The notes under the pieces are model-generated. The model saw only the letters and a list, made by a program, of their open reading frames with translations, was not told the DNA's origin and did not search any database. A stretch of DNA of 63,644 nt, the filler included, from Reticulomyxa filosa (taxonomy: Eukaryota > Protista > Foraminifera), in assembly GCA_000512085.1 (NCBI GenBank). It is 18 parts of 18 records of this genome, joined end to end, with 100 filler letters (N's around TTAATTAATTAA, not from the genome) between each part and the next. Parts side by side here need not be neighbours in the genome. Positions count along the whole stretch, not along the records: positions 39,379 to 44,164 come from ASPP01050602.1; 17 more parts are not named here. The stretch is one strand, 5' to 3'. Every line of letters begins with the position of its first letter. Position 1 is the stretch's first letter. A program made the position numbers and the translations under genes. Shown here piece by piece: positions 177-44,339 of this stretch.

Positions 177-1948
177 TAACAGACACAAAAATACTTCTCA
201 TGCAAAAAAACAGCAAATTTTTCACAAACGAAAAAACACAAATTCTTCGTATGCGACAAACAGCAAGTCTTGACGAACGGGAACTTCTTAGCACTAGACA
301 AAAAAATTTTCTTCAAAAAATTGATTATGAAAAAGTGCTCTTTATAAAATGGGCGTAAAACAATAGTAATTGAAACAATGTGTCTCGCAACGCTGTCACT
401 ATTGTGCAGTTGTCTTTTTGAATGCTATTCCACAAATGCAAGATCTGAGTCATATGCTCAGACTTGCATGCGCACATGTAGAAATACATGCATATATGAA
501 CATTGTGTTTCATTGACCCTTACTCCACAAGTTATTTCCCACATGCTTTTCTAAGTGGTCCAAATTCTTCTTTTTCTTCTTTTCTTTATAGACTATGAGA
601 CTGTTTGTCTATTGCTATTTTTGTGGAGCCACTTTTTTTGAAGACATATGGTCTTTTTTTGTTTTGCATCATTGTACTCTTTTTTTGCATGTGGTATTTA
701 ATATATTTCTGCAACTATTTTTTTTTGTGCGTTGATTTCGGGATCCGTAATATACATGCATCTGTCCAACCTGTTTTATTATAAGTTGCCGCTATTGTTG
801 TCTTTTTTAAAAAAGAAATATATAAAGATATTATTGATACCTAAAAAGAAGATGCTTTTTTCTGTCTTATAACTACACCAACAAAAGTTATAAGAGTAAC
901 GACAGGTCTTTTTACATTTTTGTTTGAATATATTATGAATAATTTGTACTAGTGCGAACATAGATTTAATGAAATCAGCAGCTACAAAAAAAAGAAAAGA
1001 GTTGAATTGCAATATGGAGTGCATTGATTTTTCAAATGATTCTTGCGATAAGTGGCTATACTCATGAAAGATACTCTTAACAATACATTGATGAAGATAT
1101 TAATCTTAAAGAAGAAAAGGAAAGAAAAAGCTTTATCTGCAGTAACTGTTGCTAAGAGAAAAAAGGGACTTTTTTATTGGTCGTTCAATAAATTGTTTTT
1201 TTACACAATATATTATTCAATAATTTTTCATTTATTTATTCATGTTTGTACAAGAATTAAGTATTTATTATAGTCTTGTGCTAGACGATCAAAGAAACTT
1301 TTTTCTTGTAAATTTAAATATTTTTGATTTAGGTCTGGTTTTACCATTGAAAGAAATTTTTCAGAAAATTTACAAATATTAAACTAATAAAAATTCATGC
1401 GATAAACAACTTAAATAAATTTGAAATCATTCCGTTATTCAATGGATCAAGGAAAAGACATTCAACTTTTAACAGAAGCTTGGATTTCCTTGGAACAAAA
1501 ACAAGAGTAAATACATATTTTGAAGCAAAAAGCAAAATTATATTTTTTGTACTAAATCAATATCGAATCATTAAAATGAATTTGGTATGCGTTGTCCATA
1601 ACAAACGCCTACTTTAATATAATGATATACCACAAGCGTTTAAAATACAAGAAATTTAAAATGCTGAACTTATGAAACAATTTCAATCAAATGGACCAAA
1701 AACCAAAATTATGACAAAGCATTTAAACAAGTTAATTGGAGGTCCGATAATAGCCAATGTAAAAAAAAAAATAGTAACAATTCTCAATGAAATTTGTACA
1801 CTCAAATAATGGTCCTTGTTACAAAAAATACCAAGTTTGTGTGACGCAATTTAAAAGAGAAAAAAAAAATATTTTTGCTAACTGAAAAGATATTCAACTT
1901 TAACTTTTAATTACTTTTCGGGGAAGCCCCAAAACAAACTAATTTTTC

Positions 1949-4900
1949 TTAATTTTGTTCTTTCCATCCTAAAGCCTTGTTGTCTTTCTCCTTGACATCT
2001 GACGAGAATTGCCACAAATGTTCATCATCTAACTTTTCTTGGGCCTTAAAATCTTCTTCCAAGACTTGTTGAATCATTGTGTCCTCTTTGAATGAGTACG
2101 ATTCCTTCAATTACAATCAACGATCCATTTTTTTAAAAACCATATAAGTAAGAAGAGACAAAAAAACCTAAACTTGTTGATACATGGACAACATTTCAAT
2201 TTTTTCATACAATCGCATCAAGCGGCTAAAGTTGATAATACCATCTTTTCGTTCGACATTCCCTTCATCAATGAAAACAATGTCTTGCAGCAACACACCA
2301 ATGTGGAGAATCGCCGGGGTTGGGGCTTGTCGATGAAGCTTTCGAAGAGCTGCCCAGTTATGCGCAGAGTCAAAGAGTTGTTGAATCTCTGCAAACGATT
2401 CTTCTTGTTTTTTGGCACGGTCTTTTCAATAGTGATGCAATATTTCCAACAAAAAACAAAGTTACTTACAAATACACATAAATATTAGCACAAAAACAAC
2501 AAGCAAAACAGAAAAACGTACACTCCAGCAAGCTTTCAATCGGAAAATTGGATTCGACATTAACGCCACTTTTACAGCACAACACGAACTAAAATTTCTC
2601 ATTGCCAGTAAATGCTGTATATTTATGTACGTACATAATATGACGATTACCATTTTTTTTTGGGATAGAAATTGTATCTTTCAAATCGACACGTAAAGCA
2701 CGTATTGTATACATCACATACCCCAGCCACGAGAACACAATTTTTGAGGACTTTGGTGCGTTCTCGTAACGATGGTGCGGTGAGAATTAACACTTGGATC
2801 CATTTGGACACTTTATTGAATTGTTCGATCATTGCCATTACATTCGGGGCTCGCTTATCGCGATCTTTTTTTTTCCACGCCTGACCCAAGCATTCTCTTT
2901 TTTGAATCACTTTAAACAGTTTGAAGTCCATTAAGGATATTTGCTATAGTATTTTATGCAATGTAAAATGACTGTGTGCATTGTATGTGTGCGTGTATTG
3001 TCACAAAATGAAATAAAAGATTAACTTCGGCCACAATCCGCGGATCTGCTTCAGAAAATTTGAATTTGCTGGGGGCACCCATTTGTGCAATGAGATTGCG
3101 TCTCGGTTGACGTTCTTTTTGAGTTTGTTTTTTTTCAAAGTCCTTGTCTTGCTGTTCGAGCGATTGGGAAATGGTTTTGGCAAGTTTTTGCACTTTTGAA
3201 TCTTCGCTAGACTCAAGTGTTTCCAAAAATTTATCCAGCATATCCAAGCACCCATTTTCGCCCACAAAATCATCGGCATAAAAGTTTCGAATCCATTGTC
3301 GCAACATATTGCCAATTTTCAATCGAATTTGCCACTCTTCGCCTGCCTCTTCAAATCTCTCGACCATTGTGCGCAAGAGATCACTGTGTTTTTCATTAAG
3401 GATTAATGGATGTTGTGCATTTTTTTTTTTTGGTTTTGTATATTGTATGTTGTATATTATATGTTGTATATTGTTGATGTTTGTGTTGTACAAATCACTC
3501 GCAATAATCAATAACACATACACACATCGAGTTGCAATATGCTTTATGACACAATAATAACACATCTTGCGTCTTGTCATCGCGTGACTCTGGGTTTGTA
3601 ATTTGAAATACCATTTGACGAATAGTGTATTCATCCGTTTCTTTTTCCTATTTATTTATTCCAAAAAATATATATACATATATGTGTATGTGTATATCCA
3701 TTTTATATATATGTATATATATTTTTACCTTTTCTTTTTGCTCTCCTGGTATCTCATCATTCGAATTGTCTTTTGAAGTGCCTGGCGTAGTCTGAGTTGT
3801 CAATGTGGTGGACTTGGTATCACCTTCGGTCGATTTTGTCTTGTCACTGTCTTTTTCTTTTTGAATCACCTGGCTTTGTCGACGCATTCCCTCGACAGTG
3901 TCTCGATAATCCTTTGCTCTCTCTTTAAACTCGTCACACACTTCCATTGCCGCTTTGATAATACTTTTGGCGGGCTGATTTTCTGGACAAACCATTTTGT
4001 GCGTGGATGGGTGCTCTTCAAACCCCAAATATTTCAAATAAGCGTCCACGCCCTCCACCCCCAGTAAACGGCTTCTTACAATTGGATTGCGCAAATCCAA
4101 CACTCGATATTTGTTATCTCCTCTCAATAGTCGCTTTGCCACTTTTCTCAAATCATCAAATAATTTTATGCCTGCTGCTTGATCGTTCAAATTCGAATCA
4201 ATATAATTCAAGATTCTCACAAAGTCCTATTCAAAATCATTTCGAATAGAAATAATAATAATAATAATAATATATTATTATTATTATTATTGGATTGAAC
4301 TACTTAGTAAGTGTATTAGTATTACAATAAAACAATCCCATTTATTACAAACTTTTATTTTTCTCTAACTTTTTTGGTCGATTGAAGTGTGTCATCTTCT
4401 GCAGGCTGTTCTCTCAACTATACGCATACATACATATTTAAAATATTATGGCCATTGTTGCTACTTTCTTTTTTTTTTCCCAAAGAGATAAAAGTGGCAA
4501 TAAAACGGAACGGCGGAAGAAGCAAAGTCAAACGTTTCTCTCGTTCCAGGTGACGATGCCCCGTAAATGGACTCTTCATCTTTCGTTGTTTTTCTCCCAT
4601 CTTCGGAGGCATCGCTTTGAAGTCGCAAATGATTTCCGGTGAGAGAACCACGAGGCGACAATGGAGGTAATGTCGACGCAGTATCATCCAACGAGTGTGA
4701 TGAATCCTATACAAAACACACATACGCCCACAAAAAAAAAAAAAAAAAAAAAGATATTGAGTTGATTGGTTCTTCAAGTTTTTATATTGCATTACCTCTG
4801 TGCCGTGGTGGATTGGCCGCGGAGTCAAACACACCGCACAAGTTCGAGTATCTTTGTCATTGTCGCTGGTACACAATTCACAGACCCACGGTTTCTTGTA

Positions 4901-7700: not shown

Positions 7701-8455
7701 CTGTTTTGTTTATTTTTTTTTTTGTTTACAGTTAACAGCTATTTCAATGTAATCTCACCAAAAATATTGATTGACTGTGTTGGTTATCTTTTTTAATTAC
7801 GTATTGATACATTTCAATCTTGTATCCTTTTTTTTATCCAAAGGGTGCAAGCTTTTCGTTCAGACACGAAAACAAGATAGTTTTAAACAAAGAATGTGTT
7901 CTTGTCTTTAGGAAAGTTAAAAGGAAGAATTTTTGTTGTCGGATGACTAGTTGGCTCTTTATCAGCTATCGAATGCTTTCAAAACGAATAATCTAACGGA
8001 TCACTCTTTGAAAGTATTACCTGTACAAAGAACGGAGCCAAGAAATAAGATGCGTTATTAATTATCATTAGAGTTTCTTCCAAATGGCCACATGAAGCAA
8101 AAAATGAAGAAAAATGAAAAATGACGGAAAAAAAAAGAGAAGTAACAAGCAGGACAAACAATGCACAACGAAAATAACGAACGTGTGAAAGCAAACAAGA
8201 AGTGAAGGAATAAACTAACAATAAACATTGATTTGACTTACAAATGAATCGACTGAATCTCGGAATTAGCAAACTTTGTGCTGCAAACAGGACATTTTCG
8301 ATTTCTGGCCACCAATGTTCGTTGCAAGCAATCTCTGCAAAAAATATGCAAACATTTGGTCAAGATTGCATTTTTTTCATTTTGAGTGCAAACCGAGCAA
8401 TAAATTTTTTGCTATGTACACATACGCATACAATTCAAAAATCATGTTGTCTTTG

Positions 8456-21099: not shown

Positions 21100-21900
21100 A
21101 TATCAAAACCACGTGGTCTTCACCACGAATTGAACATAAAAGATTGAAATTTGGATAAGATTGAAAAAGGATATTGATAATTGGATGAAATCTATTGATC
21201 CAATTGTACCAAGAGATCAAGTTTCTTTGGACAAAGCAGTCGAATCTTGGACCAAATGTATTGTTGAAGCTGGAGAAGTGACAATTGGTATCAGAACGAT
21301 TTAGAAAGGCAACAAGCCATGGTGGAGTGATAGTTTATGAGGAAACACAAGAAATTTATTCACACAATTCAAAGCATTTGTATTATTCCAGCATTGGTGA
21401 ACAAAGAGACAAATTCAGTGGCAAGATCAGATTTGACAAAGCGTGCCTATTGGCAAAGACATTTGCGGAACTCCCTACATCCAAAGATGGGATGAAAAGC
21501 TTATGAAATTGTTGAAAATGACATTAGATATAAAGTTGCAATATCTAAACCATTGGTGATATCCAACAGAATGATATTACAAAAGAAGAAGTCATTGAGA
21601 TATTTGTCGCCGTACAAAGCGCAAGGTATTAATATTTCTTTCTCAAATTATGGAATACCAACGTAGATTTTGATCAGACCGGATGGTATCACAAATCTCC
21701 AAATCTACTGGAAAGATCCAGTAACTCACAATTCAAAAAAGGAAATACAGCGCGAATTTTGATCCAACATGCTGCATTCGCAAAAACTTTAATATGTGCT
21801 TTGTACGAATGTCAAATATCCAAGTTTCCTTGCTGCTTTGCCATAGATGTAATTAACATGCTTGGAATAAGTCATGTGAATTAAGAAACAATCCAAGATA
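21100..21900 (+). mobile_element. Degraded LINE ORF2 fragment (EN-RT linker and start of RT)
   Basis: LDKAVESWTKCIVEAGEVTIGIRTI*KGNKPWWSDSL, then DITKEEVIE..SPYKAQG. Many stops and frameshifts. Confidence 0.65.
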
Positions 21901-39378: not shown

Positions 39379-39513
39379 TCATATTTAAAAACTACAATAC
39401 TTGTAGATATTTTTTTTAAAAAAAATTAGGTCTAAATGTTGATTTTTCATTGAGAAAATCAATTATCATCATAAGATATGTTTTAGGCGTTCAGTTTTCT
39501 TTTCAACCTACTA
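39379..39513 (+). mobile_element. Tc1-like TIR end at contig start
   Basis: Reverse complement of 18459-18590 (..CATCATAAGATATGTTTTAGGCGTTCAGTTTTCTTT.CAACCTACT). Confidence 0.8.
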
Positions 39514-39777
39514 TATTGTGTCGTTTAGAATTGACTTAAAAATTATGAATTTGAATTTTTTAAACTAAAAATATTTTAGTTTAATTGATTTTTACCTAGG
39601 AAAATAAAAAAGTACATTTAACTAAAAGGGTAATAAAACATTCAAAAGTATGTACGTATATTTGACCTAAGCATCGAAGATTCAACGATCGCGACTTGGA
39701 ATTCTTTTTTCCATAATATTGTTTGATATCTTCCAATTGTGAAATTTTTCCTAATCTGTATCTTATTTACAATATGT

Positions 39778-40006
39778 TGTGGGACGTCAGCTGGAAGAGG
39801 TTGTACTAAATGTAATACGAAAATGGTTTTGCTCAAGAAACCAATGTTCGATAAAACAAAAGTGAACTAAATAAAAGAAAGATGAATAACGCAACAAAAG
39901 AAGAAAACAAAACAAAAGAGTAAGTGAAGTTGGAGTCCCCAGTGGGCTAAAACTCCTCAACCCAGGTTCTTTCAACGTTCAGATATTTATAGGGCCTTGC
40001 CCTACA
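39778..40006 (+). mobile_element. Solo-LTR-like element (229 bp)
   Basis: TGTGGG...GGGCCTTGCCCTACA, same length as the 37305 copy. Flanks ATGT/CTGT (3 of 4 match). Confidence 0.7.
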
Positions 40007-40611
40007 CTGTTGACATTTTTCAAACGTGGTCCCAAAGTTAGTCAATTCTTCTATAATTACGTTGATTTTGGAATCAAGATCTTTCCATTTTTAAGATTGT
40101 TAAAATTTTTAAAAAGTTTTTGAAACTTTTTATGTTTTTAGTTGTAATTTATCGTCTTTTTGTTTTATGTATTTTGTTTTGTTGAAATCATTTTGATGAA
40201 CGTCTAACACAAATTCACAATTCTGACAAAAAAACAATTAAAAAAAATTCAATTAAAAAACTTTGTTTTTTATCTTTATCGTTCTTAATATAACAATCAT
40301 TTATTTTTTTTTCTTGTTTTGATGCATTTGTTCACTAATTTTGCTATTTGTTTCAAATTTCATGATTACTGGACAGCAAAGTTAACATTTAAATATTTAC
40401 AACATCAATAAAATTCAGATAATGAAGGAAAATAGCAATTGTTTCTAAGAGTAGATTTAAGGAATTGATTTTTGTGATCAATTGAAATATCTTTATGTCA
40501 TATTTCTTTTACTTTTTTGAAAAATGGCATTTGCATTCATTGATTGGAAAAAACTTTCTGCATAACGACTTGCATAAACTTACTGTCCCACAACAAAGCA
40601 AGACAACATTA

Positions 40612-43600
40612 CTAAGTATAAGACTTGGAAAATTTTGCTCTATAAGCGTTAACGAGCGCAGAGCCATTCGCTCCTCCCGCATTTTTGAGTACTTCCTCAG
40701 AAATTAAGTCGGTTAATTGATCTGAACCCTTATTTGAACGAATTTCCAATTTTTCGCATCGACCATCTGTAATATTAGCAATCTGCATAAAATTCTGTTG
40801 CGCTTTTCGCCCAATATAAAAAGCATGGACTGGGATATTACGTTGTCTCAAAAGTGCAAGTTCATCTTCGTAATATGTGGGATGAGAGAATAATTTTGTA
40901 TTTCCCCAATAATTTTCTCCAAATTTATCTTTTCTTTTAATTATTACTTCTTCTTTTGTATTTGCTGGTGCGTCCCCAATCAAAATGATCTGTGAAACAG
41001 CTTCTTTCTTATTTTGTTTATTGACATGGGCCAATCCAATTTCAATAGCTTTACTTCCCCATCCATAGTCAGCCTTAATACTTTCCATAAAATTGCGAAG
41101 ATTTTCAGGTTTAGATTCCCAAGTGGAGGACTGCAAAATCATATCTTCAGGAGCATTGTAATTTCGATACACAACAAATTGCATTTCAAAACTGTTTGGA
41201 GGTTCTCCATTTTCTTTTAAAATAATTGAAATACGTTCAAATATTGTGCTCACTGTATTTTTAACTTTTTGTAACAAATGATCCATCGAACCAGTTGCAT
41301 CCATAAGCACTATTGTACGTGAAGATTTTTTCTCTCTCGCTCTGTTCCGTTCACATAATATTTTCTTCACAGTATTTACATCGTTTATTTTTACAGCGGT
41401 AATTAATTTCTCGGCCAGTTCATGCTCTTTTGAAGCATATTCCACAAATTGTTTGTTCTCATCATATTTAGTTTTGAAGAACTCATTTCGCTTTACATCG
41501 AGCATTGGATACAAGTCGCCTGAATTACGCGCATTTTCAATATCTTGTTGCGTGATCAAGAATTTTTCAAGTGATTTATCACACAATATCAAACTGTAAG
41601 AACCAGAAGTTCCTTGTCTTGCTGTACGTCCCTTGATTTGCACTTCCTCAGACAACTCCTCAGAAAGGAAGGTTTGAATCACATGAGGTCCACCATTAGC
41701 AGACACAATTTGATCACAACAGTAAAAATCTGTTCCTCTTCCAAATGCTTTGGTAAATAATCCTACTTGGCCAGAACTGGTGGCACGCTTAACGAGAGAT
41801 TCTTTGGCGTCGGGAGATGTTTCTTCAGTCATTACAAGTGCCTCTCCTTTCATTGCAAGAAAATTGGATGATTCATGAAACTCAGTTAATTGTTTGTTGC
41901 TCTCAAAGAACACCAATACAGCTCGTTTTGTTCCTTGTGTTTTTCCAACAAGCCGATCATCAATTTCTTTTTTAAGAGTAATGAAATAATCATTTTCATT
42001 CACAATGGAAATATCCTTTTGTTGTGCAAAGACAAGATTATTATCACCAAATGAAGATGGCATGTAAGTATGTTTGGAAATATGATACTCTTTCTCCACT
42101 ACTTCTTGTTCAGATGCACTCAACGTTTTCAATGTCCTACTCACACCTATAATACGATAGAAATTTTTGGGAACCTCGGCATACGAAAAATTTCCAATTT
42201 GGAATGAAAGGAATATATTGTTTTTTAGACTTTCGGTACTGATTTTATTTTGTGCATGTTCATGATAATACGCAAATAAAGTCTTGTAACCACATCGAAT
42301 ATTGTAAGAAATACCATCTTGTTCTTTGTATCCAATTTTATCATTGCTTATTTGATATCCATGAGATAAAAAGTTTTGAACATCGCTCAATATATCTTTA
42401 ATCGCTTCATCCAACAATGAATCCCATTCCTTCAATACATTACAACATGCCTTGTATTCATTGCATTGTTTTACCTCCTCCAAAGTTAAATCCGACTCTC
42501 TATATTCCCAAATGAAATCAATAAGTTTGGTGATGGAATCATGTCGTAATGTAGCTGCAGCTGAATAGTAGCCGCCATAAAAGTTTTTGTTGAAAAACAC
42601 ATCGACCTCATCGATTAAAAGTATCTTTGAGCGAATAGGTTCAACAGTTTTTTTCTCGTCATCATTTCCAGGAAGGATAAAATTTTCAACAAGTTTACAC
42701 ACAGCACTTCCTTCAATAATCCTTTCACAAATCTTGTTGAATGTGCCATAATGAATGTGACTAATTACACCTAAGATATTAAATAATTGCTCAAAACTTT
42801 TGAAATCTCTATTGCTCAAGTATCCACTGTATGAAGCGCAACTCACATCAAAGCCGAGTAATGCTAATACACAACAAGTAACTGCCAAAGTCACTGATTT
42901 TCCTTCTCCTGTTCCAATTTGAATCAAGCGATTTGTTAATCCATTTTTGTTTTCAACACCCAACATGCGGAATATGGAAATTACTTGAGCTGGATATGGT
43001 TGTTTCAAATAAAGACTTTGATCTTCCACTCCTTGTGCATCATGATAGCATTGTGCATGTTGAAGTGTCCACAATGCAAAAATATTGGCTATTATTTCAG
43101 GGATTTTGTTTTGAATGTTTGTGTCCCATCTTTCATCCTCTGGCCTTTGTTCGATACCACCAGCACATATTCTTACATTAGTTGCAAGTGTAGAGAGTCT
43201 AGGATCTTTTTTGGCTTCGGTCAGATTGTCACGCACAAGTTGGCGATATTTTGTATTAAATTCATCGTACATTTTTTTCAAGTTCGATGTATCTATTGGA
43301 TCATCTTTTTCTCTAATCTTTTCCAAAACATAGTCAATTCCATGCGCTTTGATTTTTTGATTGAATAATGCATCTTCAGGAATAACATCAATGATATCAT
43401 CAGAATCGTTTTCACTTTCCATTTGCTTTGCCATGGTCTCAACAACAAGTTGGAATACAGTCAAACCATTTCGATTTAGTAACATACTTTCCCAAATGCT
43501 TTTCAACTCTCGTTCGCTATCAATTGTATTGCCTTTATCTTTGGCATTTCGGAATAACACATATTTGTCATTGAGATCAAATTGTTTTATTACAAATTGC

Positions 43601-44070
43601 TTCATTTCTACAAATTCTTTGTTCCAATTATACGTACTAATGTCAGCAGACATTGGTGGATTGAGAGGAATCCAACTCACACGATTATTGTTGTACTCAA
43701 ATACCAAGCACATCTTTTTATTTTATTCATTTAATACACAAGAAATCTTTTTTTTAAATAACATTAAATTTTAAAAAAGTAAAATAAAAACGAAACAACG
43801 AGAAGTTGAAGAGTGTGTAAAGTATTATCAATCGAAAATTCATCAAAATAATCCTTTAATTCTTCGGCATTTTCAATTCTATCATCTCTATCATTTACTC
43901 TCGACATCAAAAAAAGTTTTTCCTTATTTTTTAATTTCAAATGTTCGAATACTTTATTTCGTAATTCACTCCAATTTTTTTTCCATACATCTTTGACTAT
44001 TGCTTCATTTGCGTCATTCACATGTCTTGGAGTGAATTCAAATATCAATGTGACACCATCCGTTATTTGA
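40612..44070 (-). CDS. SecA-like SF2 ATPase with two N-terminal PB1-like modules and a C-terminal vWA domain
   Basis: 1033-aa exon with PYPAQ, Walker A QIGTGEGKS (42895-42915), LLIDEVD (42601-42612), FGRGTDF and EEVQIKGRTARQG (41611-41631). vWA: VLMDATGSM (41284-41304), IILIGDAP, IPVHAFYI. An upstream exon (43797-~44070) splices in frame through intron 43714-43796. The 5' end is lost at the contig end. Confidence 0.9.
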
Positions 44071-44339
44071 AATTTTTTTTCTTTGATTTTCTTTTGTGTA
44101 TTTTTTTACAAAACAACATTTATCCATTTTTTTTTTAGAACAAAAAATTACTCCACTTTTATCANNNNNNNNNNNNNNNNNNNNNNNNNNNNNNNNNNNN
44201 NNNNNNNNTTAATTAATTAANNNNNNNNNNNNNNNNNNNNNNNNNNNNNNNNNNNNNNNNNNNNTATTTGTATTTGTATTTGTATTTTCTTTTCATTGTC
44301 TATTTATCTCTTTTTGTTGCGGGGTCAATGAAATGTAAT

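Follow-up and report, generated by a model that had tools for sequence, protein, structure and literature searches.

A SecA-like motor joined to a vWA domain and PB1-like modules in Reticulomyxa filosa, a candidate non-translocase member of a giant protein family

Gene structure and source of the locus

The stretch of DNA analysed here, referred to as the window, comprises 63,644 nucleotides from the foraminifer Reticulomyxa filosa (assembly GCA_000512085.1) and holds a gene for a SecA-like ATPase, which is joined to a C-terminal von Willebrand factor A (vWA) domain and preceded by modules with a PB1-like fold. The gene lies on the minus strand of the piece 39379-44164, which is the whole of contig ASPP01050602.1 (4786 bp), and its coding parts have a G+C content of about 33-40% versus about 22-26% in the flanks. 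Its main part is a single open reading frame (ORF) of 1033 aa, 40612..43713, the residue numbers of which are used below. This frame begins with module B (43435..43713, residues 1-93 of the long exon) and a linker (43372..43434) that holds a recombination or deletion junction, followed by N-terminal helices and the first part of the SecA nucleotide-binding domain 1 (NBD1) with Walker A and Walker B (42595..43371, residues 115-373), and an insert at the position of the SecA preprotein-crosslinking domain (PPXD) (42148..42594, residues 374-522, 149 aa). Motif III and NBD2 come next (41560..42147, residues 523-718; GVSRTL, GRGTDF and QIKGRTARQG), then a helical scaffold (41329..41559, residues 719-795) that includes a 42-residue helix, 734-775, and finally the vWA domain and stop codon (40612..41328; stop 40612-40614), with D805-A-T-G-S809 and G913-D914 as parts of a putative metal-ion-dependent adhesion site (MIDAS) and with one extra helix at the C-terminus.

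The ATG at 43713 is read as an internal methionine and not as the start, and the gene is read as being truncated at its 5′ end by the contig edge and as having at least three N-terminal modules, since the first 8 bases of the contig end a further exon, as they do in the paralogue locus L080 (ASPP01021739.1). These 8 bases (44157..44164, minus strand) encode the last codons (..VIK) of the upstream exon, module 0, the remainder of which is lost at the contig edge; in L080, the same 8 bases close a full module-0 exon (MSISKV...SLDIVIK), which is followed by the same donor, GTGGAGTAATTTT. Next comes intron 1 (44091..44156, minus strand), a predicted GT..AG intron of 66 nt in phase 0, and then exon A (43797..44090, minus strand), which has 98 codons in symmetric phase 0-0 and encodes PB1-like module A. 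An in-frame stop lies upstream of exon A, and the gene model of the paralogue RFI_03864 (P0124), on locus L079 (ASPP01003559.1), has an intron directly before module A. Modules A and B are separated by intron 2 (43714..43796, minus strand), a predicted GT..AG intron of 83 nt, also in phase 0, whose position and phase match the intron of the RFI_03864 model between QIIV and ICFIFEY. Both L079 and L080 belong to assembly GCA_000512085.1. The exons were examined one by one.

The remaining 3.1 kb of the window gene contains no introns, and the same is true of the 7-kb body of RFI_03864. The original prediction had placed motor and vWA in one intron-free 3.1-kb exon, with an intron separating the N-terminal modules, and this was borne out, the intron in question being 43714-43796. 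A symmetric exon ahead of an intron-free body fits a pattern in which exon-shuffled adaptors would have been set on an acquired intron-less body. The locus is judged from its sequence to be a real nuclear R. filosa gene and not contamination, because it has GT-AG introns, R. filosa paralogues in tandem, and a ratio of nonsynonymous to synonymous substitution rates (dN/dS) of 0.23-0.29 versus two paralogues; the bacterial contamination that had been considered at the outset was thus not what was found.

The SecA-derived motor and the vWA domain

All of the SecA-type motifs predicted earlier are present at the checked coordinates, i.e., GEGKS (Walker A, residues 269-273, 42895-42909), DEVD (Walker B, residues 368-371, 42601-42612), GRGTDF (residues 658-663), and QIKGRTARQG (residues 692-701), each on the minus strand, and they are invariant or near-invariant in a 60-sequence family alignment. 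Pfam matches were obtained for SecA_DEAD (residues 203-318, E-value 4.7e-10) and Helicase_C (residues 589-701, E-value 3.9e-6), together with a weak match for P-loop_SecA, and the NCBIfam SecA/SecA2 models match in pieces, with 22-56 bits versus cut-offs of 725-1085. A search of PDB sequences (phmmer) with the window protein returned SecA chains only, and the alignment to these showed that the sequence following Walker A in NBD1 is SecA-specific.

An AlphaFold2 model of the window protein was built with the family alignment, giving a mean predicted local distance difference test (pLDDT) score of 84 with residues 111-1030 confident. A Foldseek search of this model against the PDB placed SecA/SecA2 structures in all of the top 36 positions (E-values down to 5e-18), ahead of integrin beta-I and CMG2 vWA domains. 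The rigid VIA alignment to Bacillus subtilis SecA (1tf2) paired model residues 142-777 with SecA 16-618 over 438 aa at 3.2 Å, covering NBD1, NBD2, and the long scaffold helix (model 734-775), and the VIA alignments to SecA begin at model residues 131-142, equivalent to SecA 5-16. The model thus supports the original proposal that the motor is SecA-derived, with SecA by far the best fold match. However, the parts of SecA that follow the scaffold are not recognisable in this protein: helix 734-775 is followed in the model by a short helix and then directly by the vWA domain, no Pfam match to SecA_SW (PF07516) or SEC-C was found in the window protein, and the model has no counterpart of the helical wing domain, the two-helix finger (IRA1), or the C-terminal tail, the protein ending in the vWA domain plus one helix. 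These results agree with the earlier claim that a vWA domain takes the place of the SecA wing. Because a protein without the finger cannot insert a finger into SecY, the non-translocase reading, likewise proposed at the outset, appears well founded on the basis of the model and the Pfam matches.

The vWA domain itself was matched by Pfam VWA at residues 802-983 (E-value 7.8e-5), with 23.4 bits, just under the cut-off of 23.8. The model contains the Rossmann-like vWA fold, from beta1 (798-805) through alpha7 (996-1012), plus one further helix. D805-A-T-G-S809 (DATGS, residues 805-809, 41287-41301, minus strand) and D914 are conserved in the family alignment, in line with the MIDAS-type vWA that had been predicted at the C-terminus.

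Within the motor, the insert that runs from DEVD to motif III measures 149 aa in the window protein and 145-154 aa in most of the 60 family members compared, and it is modelled as a two-strand stem with an alpha/beta bulb. Among distantly related SecA-like sequences, those of Legionella, Coxiella, Parachlamydiaceae, and Mycoavidus have a recognisable SecA_PP_bind domain at exactly this position and lack SecA_SW. In addition, the cluster nearest to the insert in a language-model search was SecA_PP_bind, the score of 0.90 being borderline. Both this placement and the domain found in the distant relatives favour homology between the insert and PPXD, which the sequence and profile comparisons given below did not detect.

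The N-terminal PB1-like modules

Modules A and B are paralogous to each other (phmmer E-value 6e-6), and module A is in turn matched by residues 194-285 of RFI_03864 (phmmer E-value 5e-36). A model of module B, folded with 14 module copies as the alignment, has a pLDDT of 88.7 and the beta-grasp order beta-beta-alpha-beta-beta-alpha-beta. The top Foldseek matches of module B in the PDB are the PB1 domains of NBR1, PKCiota/Par6, AtNBR1, MEK5, and MEKK3, with template modelling scores of 0.61-0.66; PB1 domains also head the VIA-wide structure list for this module, and the ESM Atlas shape matches again consist of PB1 clusters or proteins. Both modules show a D/E-rich acidic stretch at the beta3-beta4-alpha2 (OPCA) position, which in module A is the OPCA-like stretch NDRDDRIENAEEL, and their beta1 reads F-E-[FY]. 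The term PB1-like is used here, on the strength of the module B model and the structure searches, as a statement on fold and not on family membership. The original prediction of two paralogous beta-grasp-like modules therefore stood as regards paralogy and the beta-grasp fold of module B, but their number did not, since at least three modules are read from the locus.

An exhaustive HMMER search with module B found 8 proteins only, among them 6 named R. filosa proteins and P0121, which lies on the R. filosa contig of L080. The named module-bearing proteins are RFI_03864, two in which a module stands ahead of WD40 repeats (ETO01313 and ETO01665), and three with uncharacterised bodies. The A-B tandem is kept in three module-bearing proteins. 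RFI_03864 has 4 modules, followed by a P-loop NTPase and then the start of the SecA-like domain. The modules are thus viewed from their sequences as shuffled adaptors, and their occurrence on unrelated R. filosa proteins is as would be expected of recruitment adaptors. The eighth match, a 6565-aa protein on a 221-kb contig (P0125), was rejected as a module bearer, as its similarity to module B came only from about 29 weak copies of an 87-aa repeat that have an 'ISWTP' motif in common; it resembles an adhesin-type repeat protein and is probably unrelated to the modules.

A giant protein family in bacteria and eukaryotes

Apart from a 100% match to itself on a 4786-bp contig, the closest named relatives of the window protein are its R. 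filosa paralogues (61-77% identity), followed by many proteins of bdelloid rotifers, which cover 89% of the query at about 50% identity, and by proteins of Hydra vulgaris and of a gammaproteobacterial metagenome-assembled genome (MAG), and metagenomic proteins. Most of the best 120 of 170 matches have 35-77% identity over 74-89% of the query. Further eukaryotic members were found in the transcriptomes of the choanoflagellate Salpingoeca kvevrii, the vampyrellid Leptophrys vorax, and the diplonemid Rhynchopus euleeides, the family being patchy in eukaryotes and expanded in R. filosa and bdelloid rotifers. The bacterial members are giant ORFs of 1800-3464 aa with GTPase matches, carried by Legionellales, Chlamydiae/Parachlamydiaceae, other Gammaproteobacteria, and MAGs of Actinomycetota and Margulisiibacteriota; the motor plus vWA unit aligns with them end to end at 30-50% identity. 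Related proteins that have the motor only occur in Legionella, Coxiella, Wolbachia, and Mycoavidus.

The full form of this family, about 3000 aa long, has a variable N-terminus followed by a P-loop GTPase, and a helical stretch of about 1700 aa then leads to the SecA-like motor and the vWA domain. The long form in R. filosa is represented by RFI_03864 (2780 aa) and the adjacent RFI_03863 (660 aa), which together make up one long gene and were annotated as two because this copy, the second of a tandem array, shifts frame at about 18602-18617 of L079. The GTPase motifs of RFI_03864 are GGTGAGKST (G1) and DTPGF (G3). About 2300 aa of RFI_03864 could be aligned with an ORF of 3048 aa from a Pseudomonadota MAG (L003, 1602-10745), the identity being 27%; this ORF starts with a U-box in place of the modules. 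The N-terminal parts of the rotifer members are homologous to the long-form helical region, and the N-termini of the rotifer, diplonemid, and vampyrellid members gave no match to PDB sequences.

A quick maximum likelihood tree (LG+G4; branch support from the Shimodaira–Hasegawa-like approximate likelihood ratio test, SH-aLRT, only) was rooted on short, PP_bind-positive SecA-like proteins. The family stands on a long, fully supported branch apart from this outgroup, and bacterial lineages without the vWA domain lie at its base. The vWA-bearing clade (99% support) mixes bacteria with Rhynchopus, Leptophrys, Salpingoeca, two rotifer clades, and R. filosa, the last forming a clade with 100% support. 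This topology fits a bacterial origin, several transfers, and an R. filosa-specific expansion. The original prediction, in which the protein was a eukaryotic rebuild of SecA, was therefore not upheld: the SecA-like motor and the vWA domain together form the C-terminal portion of a giant family that occurs as long ORFs in Legionellales, Chlamydiae, and further host-associated bacteria, and the eukaryotic copies are nested among bacterial ones. The protein is also set apart from canonical SecA by the low NCBIfam scores noted above.

The genes neighbouring bacterial members include those for Ank-PARP, TPR, and WD40 proteins. The U-box noted above, an ankyrin-PARP neighbour, and an ankyrin fusion among the bacterial relatives are compatible, as far as can be judged from sequence, with host-directed effectors. 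The ankyrin-PARP protein (L002, 13069-15399) adjoins a 3272-aa Legionellales gene, and the fusion, found in a Legionellales MAG (L019, 5877-10013), joins ankyrin repeats to a SecA-like motor.

Within R. filosa, the L079 array spans 1-20725 and holds two long-form genes in tandem, namely a 2243-aa model that runs off the end and RFI_03864 plus RFI_03863. A separate gene of 356 aa (L079, 6614-7849) lies between the long forms and is 66-68% identical to the scaffold helix plus vWA domain only (query 733-1033).

The window copy as a recombinant short form

The window copy has neither the GTPase nor the helical body of about 1700 aa, and the DNA around its linker indicates how this form arose. In a blastn comparison, window 43390-44164 is 97.8% identical to the L080 module copy, and this identity ends at 43390. 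From 43372 downstream, the window is about 80% identical to the motor copies. The 18 bases between the two blocks have a counterpart in neither, according to a four-way DNA alignment, so that the junction lies at about 43373-43389, equivalent to residues 108-114 ('DVIPED'), and is in frame. In L080, module B of P0121 is followed by long-form helical sequence, unlike in the window copy. Read from these alignments, the window gene is a derived, recombinant short form, in which an adaptor array was fused in frame to the motor.

At the L080 locus (1030-3992), a motor fragment that is 83% identical to window 42387-43372 lies upstream of the module 0/A/B array. Modules 0 and A of L080 carry frame shifts, reflecting either real decay or homopolymer sequencing errors.

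Proposed mechanism and alternative explanations

The window gene is proposed to be a nuclear R. filosa gene, truncated at its 5′ end, that encodes a cytosolic, non-translocase descendant of SecA working through a clamp, a MIDAS, and adaptors, an account that we regard as moderately probable. SecA clamps a polypeptide between PPXD and NBD2, protein ligands are bound at MIDAS sites through their acidic side chains, and PB1 and CIDE-N domains mediate homo- and heterotypic assembly. Because of this established behaviour of the three kinds of parts, we infer an ATP-driven clamp, a vWA adaptor, and recruitment by the modules. The motor would hydrolyse ATP and hold on to a polypeptide with a clamp of the PPXD/NBD2 type, the MIDAS of the vWA domain would bind an acidic residue of a partner or substrate, and the PB1-like modules would recruit the protein into homotypic signalling or conflict-type cytosolic assemblies and not to a membrane channel. 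A signalling or conflict-type system seems most likely, since the bacterial relatives are effector-like and the expansions are lineage-specific.

Several results weigh against this account or against single parts of it. The polypeptide clamp is unproven because neither sequence nor profile comparisons detect homology between the insert and PPXD: SecA_PP_bind (PF01043) matches 0 of 36 family inserts, a search of PDB sequences with the insert profile found no SecA, and hhalign against the inserts of PF01043-positive relatives gave a colinear alignment, pairing 'Y.V..dKIgY' of the family with 'dYVI...I.IVD' of the relatives, with E-values of 0.02-0.05 and negligible probability. Thus, the predicted insertion of about 150 aa after DEVD stood in position and length (149 aa, 374-522), and its homology to PPXD was not demonstrated. 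For the modules, PB1 (PF00564) matches 0 of 14 copies in Pfam, even at an E-value of 10, and the beta1 lysine of type-B PB1 domains is absent from the module alignment, so that the predicted PB1 type was confirmed as a fold by Foldseek, VIA, and the Atlas but not as a sequence family. The tree has many unresolved forks, and PADLOC gave no anti-phage defence match for the window protein and a weak P-loop match only for the long forms. Finally, the window copy lacks about 50 conserved pre-motor residues that are found in every other member, and it departs from the family at two conserved sites. At G526R, motif III reads GVSRTL (42130-42147) versus GV[ST]GTL in the family, and at E888K, beside the putative metal-site loop of the vWA domain and at the putative MIDAS threonine-equivalent position, it reads GSK (41050-41055) versus GNE. 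These substitutions may attenuate ATPase coupling or metal binding, and the window copy could be a crippled copy.

This last point leads to the explanation that the window copy is a by-product without function, whether a paralogue of a fast-turnover tandem family that is recombinant or decaying, or a chimeric contig, and its architecture would then have no biology of its own. The abrupt step from 97.8% to about 80% identity at the junction, the absence of the GTPase, of the helical body, and of a conserved segment ahead of the motor, the substitutions G526R and E888K, the frame breaks in sister copies (the L080 modules and L079 copy 2), and the fragmented assembly are all in its favour. However, a frame of 1033 codons stays open in DNA of 33% GC, the junction keeps the reading frame, and the sequences that meet there share no repeat by which an assembler could have been misled, a point against an assembly artefact. 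In addition, the dN/dS versus the two paralogues is 0.23-0.29, and departures of the window copy from near-invariant columns number 4 of 158, an average value for the family. We therefore consider a copy without function unlikely, while granting it a real chance. It is unlikely, too, that the motor acts on nucleic acid instead, as a superfamily 2 (SF2) helicase/translocase-type sensor or remodeller with a logic comparable to that of RIG-I-like or DEAD-box proteins, the vWA domain and PB1-like modules serving as signalling adaptors. SecA beats helicases by 10 Z units in the structure comparison and also in the sequence searches, the stretch of NBD1 that follows Walker A is specific to SecA, the scaffold helix of SecA has been retained, and the insert sits exactly at the PPXD site, where distant bacterial relatives have a recognisable SecA_PP_bind domain.

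Two further explanations, a true SecA-type translocase ATPase that works with the SecY channel of an organelle or symbiont and bacterial contamination, would account for the SecA motifs and fold and the fact that the closest non-eukaryotic relatives are bacterial, yet we hold either to be very improbable. The wing, two-helix finger, and SEC-C tail required of such a translocase are missing, the NCBIfam scores lie at 22-56 bits versus 725-1085, and the family is split from the PP_bind-positive SecA-like outgroup by its long branch; contamination is contradicted by the spliceosomal GT-AG introns, the AT-rich flanks, the R. filosa-specific PB1-like exons ahead of the motor, and the tandem paralogues. 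Beyond the cytosolic SecA descendant that we prefer, a bolder extension of it may be imagined, although we think it rather unlikely as a whole: the family would be a class of giant cytosolic machines, unrecognised before, that intracellular bacteria and their eukaryotic hosts exchange with each other. To the bacteria they would be host-directed effectors, whereas the hosts would have expanded them and re-wired them with adaptors of their own, as switches of innate immunity or cell fate. For the short form, this reading would have the acidic loops of the PB1-like modules docking into the vWA MIDAS in cis or in trans, as ubiquitin-like (UBL) domains do with midasin, with ATP-driven clamp movements of the SecA-derived motor controlling auto-inhibition or polymerisation; this docking is a speculation.

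Comparison with known systems

Like canonical SecA and SecA2, the window protein has a DEAD-like NBD1 and an NBD2 with SecA-type motifs. In contrast to them, it has no wing, two-helix finger, C-terminal linker, or zinc site; a vWA domain follows the scaffold helix, PB1-like modules stand in front, and the gene is eukaryotic and interrupted by introns. Compared with the giant GTPase-helical-SecA-like-vWA proteins, the window copy shares the motor plus vWA core but not the GTPase and the helices of about 1700 aa, and it carries R. filosa-specific PB1-like exons where, e.g., a bacterial giant protein has a U-box.

ATPases are paired with MIDAS domains in the MoxR-vWA systems and in midasin/Rea1, and the MIDAS of midasin binds UBL domains. 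The window protein resembles these systems in combining an NTP-driven motor with a MIDAS vWA domain, and it also has beta-grasp modules with acidic loops. However, its motor is of the SF2/SecA type and not AAA+, and a contact between its vWA domain and modules is hypothetical. The modules resemble the PB1 domains of p62, NBR1, aPKC/Par6, and MEKK2/3-MEK5 in fold, in the order of elements, and in the acidic stretch at the OPCA position.

SecA-like helicase-related domains were reported, together with GIMAP-type GTPases, STAND NTPases, and U-boxes, among the effectors of the amoeba symbiont Amoebophilus (Zhang et al. 2012, PMC3482391). A subsequent study of the eukaryotic association module of phage WO listed a 'SecA' domain type that was closer to invertebrate than to bacterial sequences (Bordenstein & Bordenstein 2016, PMC5062602), the function of which was assumed from the domain name alone. 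A 1509-aa ORF of Wolbachia wCon, the endosymbiont of Tribolium confusum (L014, 5628-10157), has SecA_DEAD and Helicase_C and is 30% identical to residues 108-715 of the window protein; unlike the window protein, it has no vWA domain, and it falls on a very long branch outside the vWA-bearing clade. The phage WO 'SecA' entries are probably genes of this kind. Giant proteins of Omnitrophota and Actinobacteria with SecA_DEAD and SecA_PP_bind but without scaffold or wing were described later (West-Roberts et al. 2023, 10.1101/2023.11.21.568195). Compared at the level of the SecA fold only, these proteins are like the window protein in having a SecA motor without membrane-docking parts within a very large protein, whereas they are membrane-anchored, with many transmembrane helices and carbohydrate-active domains. 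Thus, SecA-like domains in endosymbiont effectors and phage WO had already been reported, at the domain level only and never characterised. The literature searched on SecA plus vWA with rotifer, Reticulomyxa, and bdelloid contained no account of this family, of its fusion to vWA, of its expansions in eukaryotes, or of experiments on it; the possibility raised at the outset that the architecture had already been described functionally was thus not borne out there.

Significance

SecA is the textbook motor of bacterial secretion, and we know of no branch of SecA with a non-secretory job that has been studied biochemically. From the family described here, a SecA motor without channel-docking parts, joined to a MIDAS vWA domain, is seen to be widespread: it is present in intracellular bacteria, has moved between bacteria and eukaryotes, and expanded independently in a foraminifer and in bdelloid rotifers. 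Of the natural constructs found to combine adaptors, motor, and vWA domain, the short form of R. filosa is the smallest (about 1100-1300 aa), and its small size makes it a practical entry point to what the motor grips and what the vWA domain recognises. The gene may also serve as a concrete example of exon shuffling, with phase-0 PB1-like exons set in front of an intron-free body that was horizontally acquired.

Flanking sequence

Downstream of the window gene, no gene was recognised in 39379-40611. Two noncoding stretches of the window, 39379-39517 and 40007-40131, are 89-92% identical to the L079 intergenic sequences 21554-21759 (partly in both orientations) and 8216-8341, and these stretches are intergenic repeats common to the tandem arrays.

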